Below, piece after piece: positions 2,788 to 14,318 of a stretch of 18,688 nucleotides of DNA (its first letter is position 1; every line of letters begins with the position of its first letter). The stretch spans positions 1 through 18,688 of the forward strand of contig CBFFRQ010000117.1 of the NCBI GenBank assembly GCA_965644315.1. Reading direction: 5' to 3'. A model generated the notes under the pieces. It was not told the DNA's origin. It was given only the letters and a program-made list of their open reading frames with translations, and made no database searches. Source of the DNA: Caecitellus pseudoparvulus. Taxonomy: Eukaryota; Protista; Bigyra: Bicosoecida. The position numbers were made by a program, and so were the translations under genes.

Positions 2788-5067
2788 ATGGACCGGTTTG
2801 TGGTGCGCAAAGCCCGGGTGGCTGTTGCCCAATTTCCGCAGGCCCGGCCAGCCCGCCGGCGCGGACGCAGGGCACGGGACCTGGACAGCCCCAGCTCCAG
2901 CAGCGCAGGGAGTGACGAAGAACTCAGCTCCAGCTACACACTCTCAACGGCGCCGAATCGAGGCGCTTCGCCTCGCAGCCCTGGCTCGGACAGCAGCACT
3001 GCTCTGGCTCAGCCAGCTCCCTCACGCGGGACGCTGCATGCGCATCTGCGACCTGTCCAGGGAAGTGTGCTGCCCCAAGCGCAGAGCTCTCCTCGTGTGC
3101 CACCCACTCGGCGCCGCAGGTGGCCGCATGGAGCGTCTGTTCTGGAGCAGCTGCGACTGCGGCGCATTGGCTGCGACGCTCACAGAGATTTGAAGGTGGC
3201 GCGGGCTAGGCAGGATGCTGCCTGCCACGCCGCCGCAGCAGAGAGCTGCAGCCTGTGGCAAGCGCCTTCGCCCAATGTGTTGGCGGCGCCTTGTGCGGCT
3301 CATGCAGCAGCAGGGCGTTTCGCCGTGCACGTTAAGTCCCGCTGCGCAGTCTGCACGTGGGTGCCAGGGCACAGACACACCCCCCCCCACGTGTCCGTGT
3401 TCTGGCGGCTTGACAACGTGGCTGAGTCGGTCCAAGCGCTGCACCTGGACGACTACGCCTGCCTCGTCGTCACCGCATCCGGCCGCAACGCGTCTCTGAG
3501 CCTGCACCTGCACCTGGTCACAGTGGTCGCTCGCCGATCTAGCCACGCCCTCGCCGCCTCAGCACAAGCAGCGCGAACGGTCTCCTGGCCAGACTCCGGC
3601 GGCGGCCGGCCCATCCTGGCTGTGCAGTCCGCCCTCCAGGCAGGACAGGGTCCACGCCTGGCGGTGAGCTGGGGGAGCAGGCTGGCCTGCTTCACGCTGC
3701 AGCCTCCCGTGGCCGGGCGGCCAGCCTGGGACCTGCCTCCCCCCACCTGGCACTGCAGCATCCTCGATCGCAGGCACACCGGGTCGCTGCATGCGTGGGC
3801 TGGCGGGCAGCAGGCGCAGCGCCAGGCGCCACAGCAGGGCGGGGGGAAGCCCCTGCCGCGGCGGCCGCGTCAGGCAGCCTTCGGGCTGGCGGCCCGCAGT
3901 GCTGGTGCGGCCAGCGTCAGGGGCGACAGGGACAGCGCGCATGGCACTAGGGGACCCACCACATCGGGGTCTGTCCCTCCTGCCTCATCTCTGCAGGGCC
4001 AGCAAGTCACAGCACGGCCCACTTCAGCTGGCGTTGCGGCGGGCGTTAGGGTGCCGTCGGCATTGACGCGATGTCAGGTCGCGCAGAAACGCCTGTTCGA
4101 CCGGGTCAAGAGTGCCTCGGGGGCGCAGCCTGGGCTGCACGCTGCACCGGGCAGCGGGCGTGTGGTGGCGGTGGAGTGGTCAGGGCAGTTTCTGCTGGTG
4201 GGCGTGGGGTCCACGCTGCAGGTGTGGGACACACACCGACTGTCCACCCCCTTATTCGGCTCCGCTGCAGAGCCCCACCTAGCGCAGTGCGTCAACGTGC
4301 ACAGCCTGTTCGCTTCCCCCCTCGCCATCGGGCACCCTGCTGGCGGCGGCTTCACCTGCCCGGCCCTGGCGGCTCCCCTCCGCAGCACGGCGTCCGGACC
4401 AGGCGCCGGCGTCGAGACTCGTTTCCCTGGCTGCGCGGTGCTGGAGACATGCAAGAACCGCATTCAGGGGCTGGTGTGCATTGGGCAAGGCAGCCTGGCA
4501 CTGGTGGTGCTGGTGGATGGCGCCGCGTTCACGTTGGATGCGCAGGCCGGGGAAGTGTGCAGCATGGGGTGGGGGGAGGGCGCCCCCAGAGCCAGCACAC
4601 CCTCCTTGGCGCCCCCTGCAGCCCTGCGCACGGCAGAGGCTACCGTATCAAGAGCCATCCTGAGGGCGGCACCGGTGGCTGTTCCCAGAATCGGCCCGGC
4701 GTCTGGCCAGCGCATCGTGCCCGACCCGACGGACACACGCGCCGTGCTGATCATGCATTGGCACGGGGAGACCATCCGTGCGATTCGCCTTCGACACACT
4801 GGCCGGGCGTCGAGTTGCGTTGGGGCGCTGCGCGTGCTGCCGAGTCTGCACAGCACGCAGCTGCCTTGGCAGGGCCGGGGCGCGCTGGAGGCGTTGGAAG
4901 CTGCGATACCCGTGCCTGCGTCAGGTGCGTGGGTGGCGGCCTCTGCGTCCTGCTCAGTCGGAGTGCAGGTGGTGGGGGAGGTGTGTGTTTCGTGGTCTGC
5001 AGACCTTCCCTCCTTGCTGACCCTGCGCCGCTGGCTGCAGCTCGTCAAATGCCCAGCTCGGCCATGA
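2788..5067 (+). CDS. Uncharacterised ~759-aa protein with degenerate WD40/beta-propeller-like segments and an N-terminal APIM-like motif
   Basis: This is the distal half of the 1514-aa ORF. ATG at 2788 gives MDRFVVRK, followed by a disordered S/R-rich region and beta-rich stretches, e.g. VVAVEWSGQFLLVGVGSTLQVWDT. The start codon, any introns and the 3' end are not certain. Confidence 0.5.
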   Translation: MDRFVVRKARVAVAQFPQARPARRRGRRARDLDSPSSSSAGSDEELSSSYTLSTAPNRGASPRSPGSDSSTALAQPAPSRGTLHAHLRPVQGSVLPQAQSSPRVPPTRRRRWPHGASVLEQLRLRRIGCDAHRDLKVARARQDAACHAAAAESCSLWQAPSPNVLAAPCAAHAAAGRFAVHVKSRCAVCTWVPGHRHTPPHVSVFWRLDNVAESVQALHLDDYACLVVTASGRNASLSLHLHLVTVVARRSSHALAASAQAARTVSWPDSGGGRPILAVQSALQAGQGPRLAVSWGSRLACFTLQPPVAGRPAWDLPPPTWHCSILDRRHTGSLHAWAGGQQAQRQAPQQGGGKPLPRRPRQAAFGLAARSAGAASVRGDRDSAHGTRGPTTSGSVPPASSLQGQQVTARPTSAGVAAGVRVPSALTRCQVAQKRLFDRVKSASGAQPGLHAAPGSGRVVAVEWSGQFLLVGVGSTLQVWDTHRLSTPLFGSAAEPHLAQCVNVHSLFASPLAIGHPAGGGFTCPALAAPLRSTASGPGAGVETRFPGCAVLETCKNRIQGLVCIGQGSLALVVLVDGAAFTLDAQAGEVCSMGWGEGAPRASTPSLAPPAALRTAEATVSRAILRAAPVAVPRIGPASGQRIVPDPTDTRAVLIMHWHGETIRAIRLRHTGRASSCVGALRVLPSLHSTQLPWQGRGALEALEAAIPVPASGAWVAASASCSVGVQVVGEVCVSWSADLPSLLTLRRWLQLVKCPARP

Positions 5068-6011
5068 TGCGTTTCATCTCCGCCTCGTCGGCACCCGCCC
5101 CCCCTCCACCAGCTGGCACGGCCGTGCGTGCTGTGGGCGTCGCAGTGGCGCCGGCAGGGGCCGCCACTGCTCCGGCCGGTGTGGCGCCCACCCCCGCCAG
5201 TGCTGCCGTGTGCTCCACGCCCACTTCGGCAAGTACTTGCGCCACGACGTCGTCAGCCTCCGCTTCATCGTCTTCAAAGGCGTCTGCCAGGGCGTCGTCC
5301 ATCATCTCCTGTGTCATGTCCATGCGCTCCGTGGCCATGGCGAAGTCACGTGCCACATGCATCATGTTCTGCTGCTGCATCTGGGCATTCTGCTGCTTCA
5401 GCACGCCAGTGGCCTTGGCCATAGCTGTACCCATGGACGCTGTCGCAGCCATGCTCTGTGTTGGTGGGAGGGGGAGCAAGTGCAGCTGCCGCCGGCAGGG
5501 GGTGCGCCCGTGCGCCGCAACGCACCGTCATCTGCATCTGCATGGAAGACATGTTGGCCGTGAACCCCATCAGTTTGGCCTCGTGGTTGCGCAGCTGCAC
5601 CAGCTGCTTCGCCAGCGTCTTGACAACGTCTTTGTTGCCCTGTCTGGCGGCTCGCTTGATCTCTGCGGTCACCTTCTCTTGCTCCCTCTGCGCAGAGGGC
5701 AGCGTTGCAGCGAGGTGGCAGCAGCGGCACTCTCTGAGCCAGTCGCCAGGTTCAGGCGGCGCTGAGCCAGGCGCCGCACCTTGTTAACCAAGCGCTGTCG
5801 CTCGACGTCTCGCTTGCCACGCTCGATTTCACGCTTCCCTTCCCTCGCGTTCTCTGCGGGGGGGGGACGCAGGGCGCTATGCGTGCGCTACCCAAGTGTG
5901 GGCGTTTCCGGGAAAGGTGCGCCTGGCTTGCCTGCCCAGTTTAGGGGCGTGGCAGCGCCTCGCACACTCACTTTTGGGATCCACAGGCTTTTGGCTACCA
6001 AATGAGAACAT
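5045..6011 (-). CDS. CHMP2: ESCRT-III subunit CHMP2/Vps2 (Snf7 family), 228 aa; exons 6011-5972, 5853-5780, 5687-5526, 5455-5045
   Basis: Three GT..CAG introns give a continuous frame: MFSFGSQKPVDPKKNAREGKREIERGKRDVERQRLVNKREQEKVTAEIKRAARQGNKDVVKTLAKQLVQLRN...ERMDMTQEMMDDALADAFEDDEAEADDVVAQVLAEVG...EAEMKRIMAELGI. This has typical Vps2 motifs (LAKQLV, EMMDDAL, VxQVLxExG) and a C-terminal MIM-like helix. Confidence 0.92.
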
Positions 6012-7807: not shown

Positions 7808-10460
7808 ATGGAACCCGAGTCCGAAAGGCGTTCGATCCCACTCACAGTGCGCTGTCATGTATGCGGGGAAATAGGCCATCGGGCGGGATTCCGCGATTCG
7901 GTCTATGTTGACTGCCCCAACCGGGCTTGCTACTTGTGGTGCGTGCACAGCGAAACCCTGACGTGGTTTGCACGCCGATGGCAGGCCCACCCCGCTGGCC
8001 TTGTCCGCTCACAGCAAGCAAGACGGCCACACCACAATGACGTGTCCCTACCGAGCAAAGCCTGGGGATGGGAAGCTCGTTCGCAACATGGACGGCAGCA
8101 GCGTGTTGCGTCGGCTGCAGCAGCGTCAGGAGGGTATCACGACGCCAGCGTCCACCGTTGCTCGGCGCCTAATGCGGGCACGACGCCACCTGCCACGCCC
8201 TGTGACACACCTGTGGCAGCAGCCCCAGCACTGGCGCGTGACGTCTGCGCTTGTGAAGGTGCACTCCCGGCGCGTGACGGTGCTGGAGTTCCACCCACAC
8301 CGTCCCGGCCTCCTGCTGAGTGGTGACAAGTTCGGGGAGCTGTGTCTGTGGCGCCATGACGCGACGCAGCGGGAGGTTTGGAGTCCCCACCGGTACCTCG
8401 TATCGGCGCTCTGCTTCGGCGTGCGCGCAGAGGACAATGGCGTCTTCACAGGCAGCCAGGACGGTACGGTGAAGCGTGTGGACCTGACCACGCACGACAG
8501 CACGCCCCTTCTATCCCTGAACCCGGCTGGGTGGCAGGGGCGCCCTAAGGACTGGCGCATGGTGCAGAGTGTGGCGGGGGATGAGCGCTGCCTGTGGGTG
8601 GGGGACGACGTCGGGCTGGTGCACGTGGTGGACCCCCGGGCAGGGGGCGGGGGCCACCGCGTGCAGGCCTCCTTCCAGGCCCACGCCAAGGGGGACAAGG
8701 TGCAGTGCTTGCACGCCAACCCGGGTGTGCCGTGGCTCATGGCCAGCGCAGGCAACGACAAGACTGTGCGGGTGTGGGATGCGCGCATGCTGGGACGCGC
8801 AGCCAGTGCGTCTGCCGGGTGGGGCGTGCCCGGCACGGGTGCATGGTGGGCACCCGTGCCGACAGGGGGGGACCCCACCCCAGTGCTGACTTTGCAGCAC
8901 TCCAGGGCAGTGAGCTCAGCGTTCTGGTCGCCCTTATCAGGGAGGCACCTGCTCACGACGTGCCTGGACAACCGCATCCGGGTGTGGCATGACGTCATGT
9001 GCAGCGGGTTTCCTCAACGCTCAAAGGCACAGCCACCGCCCTCACCTGCTGCCAGTCGGGCTTCGGATGATGCATTTGCCTCCCCAAGCGTGCATGCGCC
9101 AGTGCGGGGTGGTGGCACTCCTCGTGCAGTAAAGAGCGGTGATTTGAACCTTGGCGAGGCGGCCCCACCTCCCTCCACCACGCTCATCCACAGCCACGAC
9201 TTTGGCAGGTACCTGTCACCGTTTCGGGCGGTGTGGGACCCGAAGGACACTCGGGAACGGCTGATCGCGTGTGGGCGGTACATTTCCGACAGCTTCGGCG
9301 GGGTGAAGCTGCACCCCGTGGATTTGCTGGATGCCAGCGGAACTGCGGGGGGATCTGGTGTAGTAGCTCAGCTTGTGGACCCCATCGTGACGACCATCAC
9401 ACCCGTGACAGCAATCTCTCCCCACGAGCAAGCTATCGCAGCGGGGTCCAGCATGTCCCTGTTCTTGTGGAAACCTGTGTCCGCTGGGAAGCAGCGTGCT
9501 GACGGAGAAGGATCGGGCGAAGGCGACGACACGCCAGCCGCCGCATCAGCCGATCGCGACCAGGCCACACGCAGCCCTGCGCCCTCCGACAACACACCTT
9601 GGTGGGAGCTCCCAGAGCACTGCCATGTGGAGTCCCCCGTGAGCAAGGGGAGCAGGAAAAGCGGCAAGAAAGGCGGCAAGAAGCGGCAACGCAATGCCGC
9701 CGCCGCCTTCACTGCCGCTGCCGAAGCAGCCCTTGAGGCCCAGCCCCCAGCACCAGAGGTACTGCTGCTGGACGGGGCTGAGGGTGACGTCCAGCCATAC
9801 AGCATGCAGGCAGCTCTGAAGAAGGCCCGGCGCGCGACCCAGGCAAAAGCGCGCAAGGCCATGAAGACCACGGCAGCGGGCGACACTGCATCCCAGCGAT
9901 CCGGGGCGTCGAGCGAGCCGCGCAAAACTGCACAAAAAGGGACAATACGAAGAAGGAAAGCGACTGACACCAACGCCAGCGTGGCAAGTTCGCAGGGCAT
10001 GGCTCCTGCGTCGCCTGCACCGGCTGCGTCCGCACAGCGGCGGCCCTCACGGCGCAGCAAGGGGTCTACGGCAAGTCCACCAGCTGTGCTCCCCACCTCA
10101 CCACCTTCCACCAGCAAGTCGAAAACAAGTCCGTACTTTGATGCACAAGCTGCCGCTGACCAGGAGCTCCCAGGTGGCGCTGCGGCGGGCTTGGCGAGGT
10201 TTGCTTTTCGGGGTGGTGGAGACCGAGGTCGAGCGGCACGGCAACTGTGCCGTCCAGACGCGCCGAGCAGCACTGCATCTACACTGAACACATCCGCAAC
10301 TTTAACCCAGCCCTCAGATTCCGCTGTGGCAGGCGGCCGCAGGGTCCTGACTGGTACTCAGGAAGTCAGCGACAGCGACAGCGAGGCGGGGGACTTCACG
10401 GGCCCTGCCGCGCCGCCCCCCGAGGCGCCTGAAGGCACCAGCCCCTACTTTAAGAAGTGA
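7808..10460 (+). CDS. DDB2: DNA damage-binding protein 2 (plant/algal type: zinc knuckles + WD40), 858 aa; exons 7808-7938, 8015-10460
   Basis: Intron 7939-8014 restores CHVCGEIGHRAGFRDSVYVDCPNRACYLCKQDGHTTMTCPYR, like the plant DDB2 N-terminal CCHC region. WD40 repeats follow (HSRRVTVLEFHP, SAGNDKTVRVWDAR, LLTTCLDNRIRVW), plus the DDB2-like segment HSHDFGRYLSPFRAVWDPKD...GRYIS...LHPVD. Confidence 0.9.
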
Positions 10461-10505
10461 CTGCCAGACAAAGCAAATGCATTGGTGTGAGCGGGAGCAC
10501 AGCTT

Positions 10506-10583
10506 GCGCTGCAGCGCTGCGTTGGTCAGAGGCGGGTGTCCCGTGAGGGCTGCCACCCGCCTCGTCGTGACGCTCACTTGCGC
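10506..10583 (-). promoter_or_regulatory. Putative non-canonical SECIS element (type II-like) in the 3' UTR of the SelK-like gene
   Basis: Minus-strand RNA: GCGCAAGUGAGCGU C ACGAC GAGGCGGGUG GCAG CCC UCAC GGG A CACCCGCCUC UGAC CA ACGCAGCGCUGCAGCGC. It has a perfect 10-bp helix II closed by opposed GA/GA (CGAC / UGAC), an apical ministem, and a lower helix (GCGU/ACGC, AGUG/CGCU, GCGC/GCGC). It lies ~100 nt 3' of the in-frame UGA. Confidence 0.75.
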
Positions 10584-10649
10584 CGGGGGGAGGAGGGGAG
10601 GTGGTGCCTCGCAGCACCACAGGCCCATGTCAAGGGAAGCGTTGGCTCC

Positions 10650-11018
10650 TTAACATGGGCCGCGCCCTCAAGCCCTGGGGGGCGCCTTGGGCAGGTCCCG
10701 GATGCCCATCACGCGAGGGCCACCCCCCCCGCGCCCACCTCTCCCGCCCCCCCCTGTGGCACGAGCTTGGCCGCCCGCGGCAGGGGGGGCTTGTGGCGCA
10801 GTCATGCACTTGTACACTGCATACCCGGCGCCGCCAAGCAAGGCCCCCTTCATGCCGAGCAGCAAGAAGCCCAGCAGCACGATCCCCCCTGCGATGAGGA
10901 GCTCCTTCTGGCTGCCAGCACAGGCAGAAGCTTGCGCTGGGGCAGCTCGATCAGCCTGTCCATCAGCTTGGGGGGCGGTGGCACCGTTGTCGATGCGCCC
11001 GTTTGTGATTTTCACCAT
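10650..11018 (-). CDS. SelK-like membrane selenoprotein, 122 aa, with putative Sec (UGA) at residue 117
   Basis: Starts MVKITNGRI (cf. human SELENOK MVYISNGQV). A hydrophobic segment LLIAGGIVLLGFLLLGMKGALLGGAGYAVY is followed by a G/R/P-rich tail, then GPRVMGIRDLPKAPPRA-TGA-GRGPC-TAA (cf. SELENOK ...RMGRINHLRGPSPPPMAGGUGR). A SECIS-like hairpin lies downstream. Confidence 0.8.
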
Positions 11019-11227: not shown

Positions 11228-12146
11228 TCACTTGGCAGAAGCTGCAGTGCCCTGCGCGGCGACAGCAGCCTCCTTGGCCGCGATGGCATCAGCATCTCCC
11301 AGGTAGTAGTGCTTGATGGGCTTCAGGTCAGCGTCCAGCTCGTACACGAGAGGCACGCCAGTGGGGATGTTCAGCCCCGTGATCTCGTCATCCGACACGC
11401 CGTCCAGGTGCTTCACCAGCGCTCGCAGGGAGTTGCCGTGGGCTGCCACCAGCAGGTCCTTGCCCTCCTTGATGGCTGGTGTGAGGGTGCCTTCCCAGTA
11501 AGGCAGCACGCGCTCCAGGGTCAGCTTCAGGCTCTCCGCAGCCGGCAGGAGGGCAGGGTCCAGGCCCGCGTACTTGGGGTCGTTGGCGGGGTGCCGTTCA
11601 TCCTCCGTGTCCAGGGCAGGAGGTGGGATGTCGTACGACCGGCGCCAGATCTTTACCTGCGCGTCGCCGTGCTTGGCTGCCGTCTCAGCCTTGTTCAGGC
11701 CGGTGAGTGCGCCGTAATGGCGCTCGTTCAGACGCCAGGAGCGACAGACGGGGATCCAGCACAGGTCCATTTCCTCCAAGACATGCCTGTGCGGCGGGCA
11801 GCAGCACTAGGCCATGCTGTGAGCGGGTGGCCAGCAGGCGCGGCACCACTCACCACAGAGTCGTGATGGCCCGCTTCAGCACCGAGGTGTGGGCGGCGTC
11901 GAACTTAAAGCCAGCTTCTTTCAGCAATACACCCGCGGCCTTGGCCTCGCTGTGCCCCTTCTCACTCAAGGCGGCGTCTGCGGGTGCCGGTGAAGAGGTG
12001 CTGGCCAGCTGCGGGAATTGCGCCCCCTCCACACGCTTTCACACACCGTGCCACCCGCAGAACTTGTTGGCCTTGTTCCACTCGCTTTCGCCATGCCTGA
12101 TGAGTACCAGCCTGTGGGCAGCCGCAGAGGAGGATGCTTCGGCCAT
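11228..12146 (-). CDS. gpmA: 2,3-bisphosphoglycerate-dependent phosphoglycerate mutase, 260 aa; exons 12146-12047, 11977-11854, 11786-11228
   Basis: Contains [12 protein letters not shown] (catalytic RHG), [50 protein letters not shown] and [14 protein letters not shown]. Introns 12046-11978 and 11853-11787 are GT..CAG and preserve phase. Confidence 0.97.
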
Positions 12147-12496: not shown

Positions 12497-14318
12497 TCAT
12501 GCTGAGGACGCTGGGCGTGCGCGTTTTTGAGGCCCGTTGGGCACGGGCGTCGCTGCTGCGCTGCCCGAGTCACTGGCCATGGGCGACACCTCACTCGCTT
12601 CATCTTCCTCCCCAGGCGCAGGCATGTCCAGCATGGGCGGCGTGTGCGCGCCACCCTGCCCCTGCAGCAGCGGCAGCCCCAACACCATGCGTGCTTGCGT
12701 GACGAGCCTTCCCAGCAAGCGCAGCTGCAGCGCAGCGGCGCCTGCCGCCACCCGCAGCAGGCGCTTGTCGGCGTCTTGCGGCGCGACGGGTTCGCACCAC
12801 ATGTGGTCCTCCAAGCTACCCGCCTCCGCCGCCTCCACGCTGGCCCCCGCCGGCAGGGAGATGCCGGCGAGGAAGGGCACCTCCTCCCGCAGGCTGCGCA
12901 AGGCCCGCGCAGCTGCAGCCATCTTGCTGGCCACCTTGCCCGTGAGTGTGTCGCGCAGCTCTGAGAGGACGTCCCGCACCTCCACCAGCGCCTGGCCCGT
13001 CAGGGTGATGGGCATGTACAGGCTCTCCAGCGCAGAGGTGTACTGCCCGCCGCCCAGCAAGTCCGCCTCGAAGGACGCCTGCCCCTCCCACGCGCCAGCA
13101 TCGCCGTCTCCCGCAGCACTGCCCCCGCTGCTGGCCCGCACACGCCGCTTGGTAGGCGATGTGACGCGGAACAGCGCTTCATCCGGCACCTCGTGGCCCT
13201 CAGACCGCACCTCCGCTGCCACCTGCCGCTCAAGGAAGGCGCACACCTGCAGGACAGCTGGACCACTGCGCAGGATGCTGAGCACCTGCTGTGCCACCCC
13301 CAGCAGGGACGCCCGGATGCTGGTGAGGGTGCTCAGGGCCTCCTGTGCCTGCTGCCCCCACCCCGCAACGCCGCCGCCGCTGGCCAGGCCGGCCTCCGCT
13401 GGCTGGGGCAGCCCCAATGCAGACAGGAGGGGGGACTCCTCTGCTGAGCTCGCAGGAGTACGCACTTCGTGACATTCAGGGGGCACTGCCGCCGCCGCCG
13501 CCGCCGCCGCAGTAGCGAGTCGCTCCCGCAGAGCTGCCAGCTCCCCAGCCGCCCCCTTGCGCGCAAAGGCCACCGTGTCCACCAGTTCCTGGGCCTCCTT
13601 GCGCTTGGAGCGTGCGTCGAGGATGGATCGGCCCATGGCCTTGCGCTCAGCCTGCGCCTGGCTCACAGCGCGGCGAAGGCGCAGCAGCTCATAGTGCTGA
13701 GGGAAGCCGCGCTGCAGGCGGCGGGAGAGGGCGGAGCGGCGGTCTGTCAGCAGGCTCAGCTTGGCGTGCAGGTCTCCCCGGACGCCGTGCACGACGGCGT
13801 TGGCCTGCACGGTCTGTTGGTACTGCGAGTGCACCACTTGGATTTGCTTGGCCAGGGTGGCGATGCGGCGCAGGAGCTGCCCCCTGTCGGCCTCCCGGAA
13901 ACGGCTGACAGCGCTGGCCATGGGGCGCACCAAGGACAGCTTCACTGGGCGCCTGGATGCGCGGATGATGGAGAGGGCTTCAGGGAACGCCAGCTTCGCC
14001 AAGGAGCGCCCTGCGCCACAGGGTGAGGTGGAGTGGGGTACCCTGCACGGCGGTGGACAGCGTCCGCGGCACGCACCGTTGGCTGCAACGACATAGTCGC
14101 CCACCTGGAGGTCCAACAGACGCTCTGAAGCGACATGGGAGATGCAAATGCGGCTCTTGGCTGCAGAGTGGGGCGGAGGGCAGTGAGTTCGAGGGGGAGT
14201 TGCACAGTGAAACGCTGGCACCCCTGCCGCCCTCACCCCAGCGAGTGTGCTCTGGCTCTGCAAAGTCAACAAAGTCAATTTTGCGCTCCGACAAGGTGAC
14301 AGTCAGCGTGGACGCCAT
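12497..14318 (-). CDS. PDZ-domain plus coiled-coil protein, ~559 aa; exons 14318-14237, 14160-14077, 14010-12497
   Basis: After removing introns 14236-14161 and 14076-14011, the N-terminus reads ...RICISHVASERLLDLQVGDYVVAANGRSLAKLAFPEALSIIRASRRPVKLSLVRP, a PDZ GDxIxxVNG...L-type pattern. Heptad-like helices follow. Confidence 0.75.

Follow-up and report, generated by a model that had tools for sequence, protein, structure and literature searches.

A probable membrane-anchored selenoprotein behind an apparent stop codon in Caecitellus pseudoparvulus

Does a small membrane-protein gene of Caecitellus pseudoparvulus end at the TGA where gene prediction ends it, or is this codon read as selenocysteine (Sec)? 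The window, meaning the whole stretch analysed, is 18,688 nt of contig CBFFRQ010000117.1; the host genome (30.6 Mb) is GC-rich with short introns and occurs in marine samples. The ORF caller's stop is TGA 10670-10668, reached after 116 codons from the ATG at 11018 on the reverse strand. Translation of 11018 to 10500 (reverse strand) shows the frame going on through G-R-G-P-C to TAA 10652-10650, leaving the called protein six residues short, as an earlier note on this DNA had claimed. The gene very probably encodes a real hidden selenoprotein whose apparent stop, judged from sequence, is read as selenocysteine. Its coding features are:

10650-11018, reverse strand: coding sequence, single exon, 122 aa with UGA read as predicted Sec117
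10998-11018, reverse strand: N-terminal motif M-V-[KR]-I-x-N-G, kept in homologues, with I4 and G7 nearly invariant
10824-10913, reverse strand: hydrophobic segment (residues 36-65), interrupted by invariant G55
10671-10802, reverse strand: Gly/Pro/Arg-rich tail (30% G, 16% P, 14% R)
10668-10670, reverse strand: in-frame TGA, predicted Sec117, aligned with TGA in all distinct homologous loci
10650-10667, reverse strand: tail G-R-G-P-C plus TAA stop, from the read-through translation

The read-through protein (122 aa) has a pI of about 10.2, hydropathy peaks at 2.1 over residues 36-65, and the Gly/Pro/Arg-rich tail closes with a conserved motif, P-x-[IV]-x-[GT]-[IVM]-x-D-L-P-K-x-P. A low-confidence AlphaFold model (pLDDT 61, pTM 0.26) has helices at 34-54 and 56-73 on either side of invariant Gly55, with the remainder disordered. 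A shape search of the Atlas with this weak fold model was uninformative, and an Atlas feature search with the window protein came back blank. Longer starts chosen by gene callers (137 or 187 aa) were rejected because homologues begin at the MVKI motif.

Protein searches identified 11 divergent homologues (23-38% identity) from sources including Pseudopedinella elastica, Odontella aurita, a second diatom and Mantamonas plastica, all 11 terminating 3-7 residues past a D-L-P-K-x-P type motif. In the five for which DNA was available (L010, L012, L015, L018 and L019), TGA is followed by 2-6 codons and then TAA or TAG. Metagenome loci were also searched with a degenerate DNA pattern for the tail motif from which the stop codon had been left out, and in each of the 12 loci detected (12/12) the first stop is TGA. 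With duplicates and two PUB-domain proteins omitted, the distinct loci number 11 (L010, L012, L015, L018, L019, L034, L035, L037/L045, L039, L041 and L043), six of them found with the TGA-free pattern and three (L034, L037, L041) partial, their N-terminal part lying outside the available sequence. The check for a conserved TGA that the earlier note had proposed gave TGA at the aligned site in 11/11 of these. TAA or TAG lies 2-6 codons past TGA in 10 of the 11, the exception being L034, perhaps interrupted by an intron. No Cys-for-Sec form was seen among the homologous loci; 10 of 12 loci (window counted) have a Cys no more than six residues from Sec, on either side, L018 having none near Sec.

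We regard it as very improbable that translation simply ends at the TGA, or leaks through it with Trp, Cys or Arg, and that the hairpins described below arose by chance in GC-rich DNA. Gene callers stop all members at this codon and TGA is frequent in GC-rich genomes, but TGA is kept in 11/11 loci whose GC content (locus or gene) ranges from 31 to 60%, AT-rich loci included, and the short Cys-bearing tails end in TAA or TAG.

The genome search for Sec machinery suggested in the earlier note identified tRNA-Sec (72.6 bits), SepSecS (414 bits), SPS2 with an in-frame TGA of its own, and eEFSec (domain III match, 78.7 bits), plus a PSTK-like kinase as a candidate only. SBP2 was not found in the genome with an L7Ae model, whose matches we take to be ribosomal and snoRNP proteins rather than SBP2. 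The best selB HMM matches were eEF1A, EF-Tu, eRF3 and LepA and were not taken as eEFSec.

Also as previously claimed, a SECIS-shaped hairpin is present ~100 nt 3′ of the stop:

10512-10585, reverse strand: type II SECIS with ACGA core, 10-bp helix II, GCAG apical bulge and CCC/GGG mini-stem

Within it, the lower stem spans 10585-10512 and the core 10568-10525, with ACGA at 10568-10564 and the 3′ UGAC at 10528-10525. Helix II has 10 perfect pairs, with the internal loop and tandem GA/GA below and the mini-stem above; by itself the hairpin is modestly unusual (z -2.2 to -2.3). The element resembles RF00031 SECIS in helix I, internal loop, tandem GA/GA, 10-11 bp helix II, A-containing apical bulge, mini-stem and 3′ UTR position, but the quartet has C where the 5′ U belongs. 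Its GA/GA tandem, the length of helix II and the type II apex are canonical, while the 5′ quartet, canonically UGAN preceded by A/G, is CGAC in the window; the published consensus is UGAN/KGAW (PMC3753652). Rfam SECIS_1 (RF00031) gave no match in the window or the genome; it does not score the window hairpin owing to the ACGA..UGAC core and to apical unpaired bases that read GCAG instead of AA.

The lack of an Rfam match and the departure from the known UGAN consensus (PMC3753652) would fit an ordinary stop. However, an ACGA type II hairpin also lies 3′ of five unrelated genes of this genome that have TGA at the known Sec position, four of which (SelK, SelT, MsrA and SelS, all spliced) were read exon by exon:

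L020:2024-2070, forward strand: ACGA SECIS of SelK
L021:1360-1407, reverse strand: ACGA SECIS of SelT
L026:2776-2822, forward strand: ACGA SECIS of SPS2
L029:1029-1073, reverse strand: ACGA SECIS of Sec-MsrA
L070:1135-1182, reverse strand: ACGA SECIS of SelS

All 6/6 selenoprotein genes examined have C in place of the quartet's 5′ U, and AUGA or GUGA occurs in none. A strict pattern (ACGA core, at least 9 pairs, below -15 kcal/mol), set post hoc after the first five elements had been seen, gave eight matches on both strands of 205 kb of genome DNA: the six selenoprotein 3′ UTRs, of which that of SelS came to light once the pattern was already fixed, and two background matches. Chance hairpins would have to contend with this background rate of only about 1 per 100 kb. 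AUGA or GUGA cores gave no match under the same filter in the same 205 kb, and no comparable hairpin was found close behind the stop of the Cys-type GPx and TrxR loci.

Covariance models were built from two and three SECIS sequences. With window, SelK and MsrA elements, the best untrained matches in 49 kb were SPS2 (E 7e-4) and SelT (E 5e-3), and the SelS element ranked top within the SelS locus; with SelK and MsrA only, the window hairpin came first among untrained matches, weakly (E 0.18). A genome-wide model search, in which 150 of 8283 candidates were scored, revealed no new gene and failed to recover the SPS2 and SelT elements already known.

Homologous loci L012, L035, L037 and L043 have canonical AUGA/GUGA SECIS-shaped hairpins; a simple hairpin scanner gave weak or questionable candidates in L015, L018, L039, L041 and L045 and none in L010 or L019. 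AUGA/GUGA in the homologues of other organisms indicates that ACGA is a dialect of this organism, not of the protein family. Organism-wise variation of the SECIS core has been noted for GUGA (PMC3473315). The ACGA core carries the same U-to-C change as human SELENON 17195T>C (g.17195T>C), which hits the quartet's 5′ U, impairs SBP2 binding (PMC3541580) and causes myopathy (PMC3541580; PMC12839072); an ACGA core that functions here would therefore need an adapted reader. No report of an ACGA-core SECIS was found in the literature searched, a set that misses most subscription journals.

The earlier note did not include a second RNA hairpin, located between the UGA and the SECIS:

10622-10661, reverse strand: SRE/SL1-like hairpin, starting 7 nt past UGA and including TAA

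This hairpin (10661-10622) is stronger than that of the SECIS (z -4.1, 0/200 shuffles). An SRE-like role is suggested by its position, which matches those of the SELENON SRE (6 nt past UGA) and SELENOS SL1 (9 nt), both of which raise Sec insertion (PMC3628699). Similar hairpins of unrelated sequence are found in L010, L018, L035 and L039 (z -2.6 to -6.9), and none folded right after UGA in eight other loci. A small 8-bp hairpin (10602-10620, reverse strand) follows the SRE-like stem and precedes the SECIS.

Polyadenylation before 10583 had been named in the earlier note as speaking against Sec. A contig that is probably RNA instead spans the UGA through the SECIS to 10493:

10493-10801: single unspliced contig from run X6 with UGA, stop and SECIS together; RNA by the tool's guess

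In run X4 (probable RNA), which also has spliced contigs for a neighbouring gene, a contig over 10758-11002 contains no intron; strand and ends are not given by the contigs of either run. Between strains, G10584A, found in every other strain, converts a lower-stem G.U of the SECIS to A-U, and changes at 10561 and 10555, in one strain each, create a single helix II mismatch apiece. A 15-nt in-frame deletion at 10718, in the Gly-rich repeat, was seen in another strain (run X6). Three marks of a eukaryotic selenoprotein gene, namely a conserved in-frame UGA, a 3′ UTR SECIS, probably on the same transcript, and Sec machinery, are present; none of the three findings that the earlier note had set against recoding of UGA to selenocysteine was made, and its proposal is supported.

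A further copy of the entire locus (G000:C13:116321-116668) retains TGA, tail and SECIS. It is probably the other haplotype, or haplotig, since identity is 97.7% over 3.3 kb, neighbours included. MsrA is also present twice, on C5 and C10. The upstream neighbour of the selenoprotein gene is a phosphoglycerate mutase gene, and a WD40 gene (7968-10460, forward strand), encoding a protein with a Lys/Arg-rich tail, converges on it, the two stops lying ~190 nt apart with the SECIS occupying much of the gap. NCBI files close matches of three neighbours under Symbiodinium sp. KB8, an assembly probably contaminated by the organism of the window:

11228-12146, reverse strand: gpmA
12497-14278, reverse strand: gene for an unnamed protein
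5045-5730, reverse strand: chmp2b

To which family does the protein belong? The SelK/SelS identity proposed in the earlier note found no support. The window protein has no match to PF10961 (SelK) at E ≤ 10 and no Pfam match to PF06936 (SelS), and the genome has separate genes for SelK (G000:C28:42688-42933; PF10961, 38.7 bits; end GGG-U-G) and SelS (G000:C180; PF06936, 30.4 bits; end RGG-U-G), neither recovered at E ≤ 1 by a profile of the window family. The window protein has the layout of SelK/SelS, but the MVYI-type start quoted in the earlier note belongs to the C28 SelK gene. A Pfam C19orf12 match of the window protein (E 2.1) was disregarded.

DUF4605 matches the membrane part of 3/12 family members (E 1.8e-4, 1.9e-3 and 0.19), all three below the curated cut-off (27 bits; best score 21.7), and hydrophobic stretches can produce such matches. 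The window protein itself has no DUF4605 match, and a DUF4605 search of the genome gave no candidate. Two unnamed clusters, one of diatoms (0.94) and one of oomycetes (0.86), are Atlas neighbours of one homologue, followed by a DUF4605 cluster (0.85). The conserved N-terminal 20 residues presumably resemble those of FAM241, the human form of which ends just past its membrane part and is not known as a selenoprotein. FAM241 proteins (121-132 aa, ER-associated, function unknown) have a conserved N-terminus plus DUF4605 and, as reported, were not detected in single-celled eukaryotes (PMC11880036). The window protein is like FAM241A/B (PF15378) in its length of about 120-130 aa, a conserved N-terminal motif with one hydrophobic domain, and a predicted ER association, the last as described for FAM241 (PMC11880036). 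On balance it seems reasonably probable, from these sequence likenesses, that the membrane/N-terminal part is related to FAM241 (DUF4605).

We consider it unlikely that the protein is instead a SelK paralogue that has diverged, or belongs to a loose SelK/SelS superfamily and is already so labelled, with no tie to FAM241. It is small and basic, with a membrane anchor, a G/P/R tail and Sec near the end, and its N-terminal motif resembles that of the genome's SelK. One homologue, P0008, matches PF10961 over the Gly-rich tail (E 0.003; 18.4 bits vs cut-off 23.3), but this is 1/12 members for SelK against 3/12 for DUF4605 in the membrane part, the family profile misses the genome's SelK and SelS, and up to six residues follow Sec, compared with 1-2. 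The loose SelK/SelS superfamily of Shchedrina 2011 reportedly comprises proteins of <300 aa with an N-terminal membrane segment, a G/P-rich basic tail, high pI and a Sec or Cys ≤5 residues from the C-terminus. The window protein fits in size, membrane segment, tail and pI; Sec is sixth from the C-terminus here (2-6 residues past Sec in homologues) and the final residue is Cys. Family members may already stand under a SelK/SelS label in SPDB, Selenoprofiles or Shchedrina 2011. However, two algal selenoproteome studies show none of the family motifs in their supplements. Ostreococcus MSP is a different protein and was rejected as a relative, and so were hypothetical proteins 1-3 of that alga.

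In its layout, the window protein is like SELENOK/Drosophila SelG (PF10961), with a small basic membrane protein, N-terminal start, G/P/R-rich tail and near-C-terminal Sec in common, but has another membrane segment, the DLPK motif, five residues past Sec and a terminal Cys. With SELENOS/VIMP (PF06936) it shares a membrane anchor and a disordered tail carrying Sec and a partner Cys, and the hairpin after UGA recalls SELENOS SL1 just past its UGA (PMC3628699); it lacks the coiled-coil region, however, and here the Cys follows Sec. The comparisons indicate a family separate from SelK and SelS though SelK/SelS-like in layout, which occurs in diatoms, Pseudopedinella, Mantamonas and metagenomes.

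Two metagenomic genes encoding PUB-domain proteins, L040:184-1059 (forward strand; PUB) and L044:94-1360 (forward strand; PUB plus glutaredoxin), carry this DLPK tail and an in-frame TGA as well, indicating that the Sec tail is a modular unit. The simple scanner found no SECIS in either, L040 having little 3′ sequence. PUB domains bind p97, as do SelK and SelS, and the same tail on such proteins points to a p97/ERAD setting. Algal PUB selenoproteins (Ostreococcus hypothetical protein 1; PMC7539508) also have a C-terminal Sec on a flexible tail, but on a soluble PUB scaffold rather than a membrane anchor, and hypothetical protein 1 ends GCUG without the DLPK motif.

The best explanation for the locus as a whole, and a highly probable one, is a membrane-anchored selenoprotein of 122 aa from a protist family set apart from SelK/SelS and probably FAM241-related. 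More tentatively, the family may be an old, undescribed eukaryotic Sec family of stramenopiles, CRuMs and unclassified marine protists, related to FAM241A/B, with a portable DLPK..U tail, together with a fully switched ACGA SECIS dialect read by an SBP2 tolerant of the SELENON change.

We have strong confidence in SECIS- and SRE-assisted Sec insertion at UGA117. A ribosome at this codon would meet the hairpin 7 nt further on and slow down, while the 3′ UTR SECIS, its G.A/A.G kink-turn pairs intact despite C for the 5′ U of the quartet, would recruit SBP2/eEFSec/Sec-tRNA for Sec insertion, after which five more residues would be translated. Under selenium shortage UGA would act as a stop and yield a tail-less form. 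The hydrophobic hairpin would anchor the protein in the ER membrane and leave the disordered basic tail in the cytosol, an arrangement we regard as likely. Cys122, the last residue, may be the partner of Sec117; the two could form a reversible pair, a redox handle for membrane clients close to p97/ERAD, the setting of SelK and SelS, and we lean slightly towards such a role.

It is doubtful, at the same time, that Sec is inserted without making an ERAD redox enzyme, serving instead as a switch of stability or assembly that depends on selenium (with the full-length form kept and the truncated form degraded) or in acyl transfer of the kind proposed for SelK. The protein has no folded catalytic domain, the tail is disordered in the model, residues after Sec vary freely and L018 lacks a Cys near Sec. 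On the other hand, the nearby Cys in 10/12 loci, on either side, is compatible with a selenenylsulfide, and one PUB carrier of the tail (L044) has a glutaredoxin domain.

Among other genes of this genome, Sec is retained in SelK, SelS, SelT, SPS2 and one MsrA. Both GPx genes seen are Cys-type, and two thioredoxin reductases (L084, L085; G000:C87, C92) end LCCG, with Cys at the usual Sec place. A Sep15/SelM-like gene (L025; G000:C6:156695-156820; 20.6 bits) has no evident Sec codon or SECIS.

Discovery of new eukaryotic selenoprotein families is rare, and here the gene caller misplaces the end of all members with DNA available to this analysis. Should the link to FAM241 prove right, it would point research on two human proteins of open function towards the ER membrane, redox and p97, and would extend to unicellular eukaryotes a family so far reported absent from them. 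SECIS finders that demand UGA in the core would, these data suggest, miss the selenoproteome of this organism. Its ACGA SECIS is a natural, seemingly genome-wide counterpart of a human disease mutation and is directly testable: the organism's SBP2 or ribosome should reveal compensation for the lost U.
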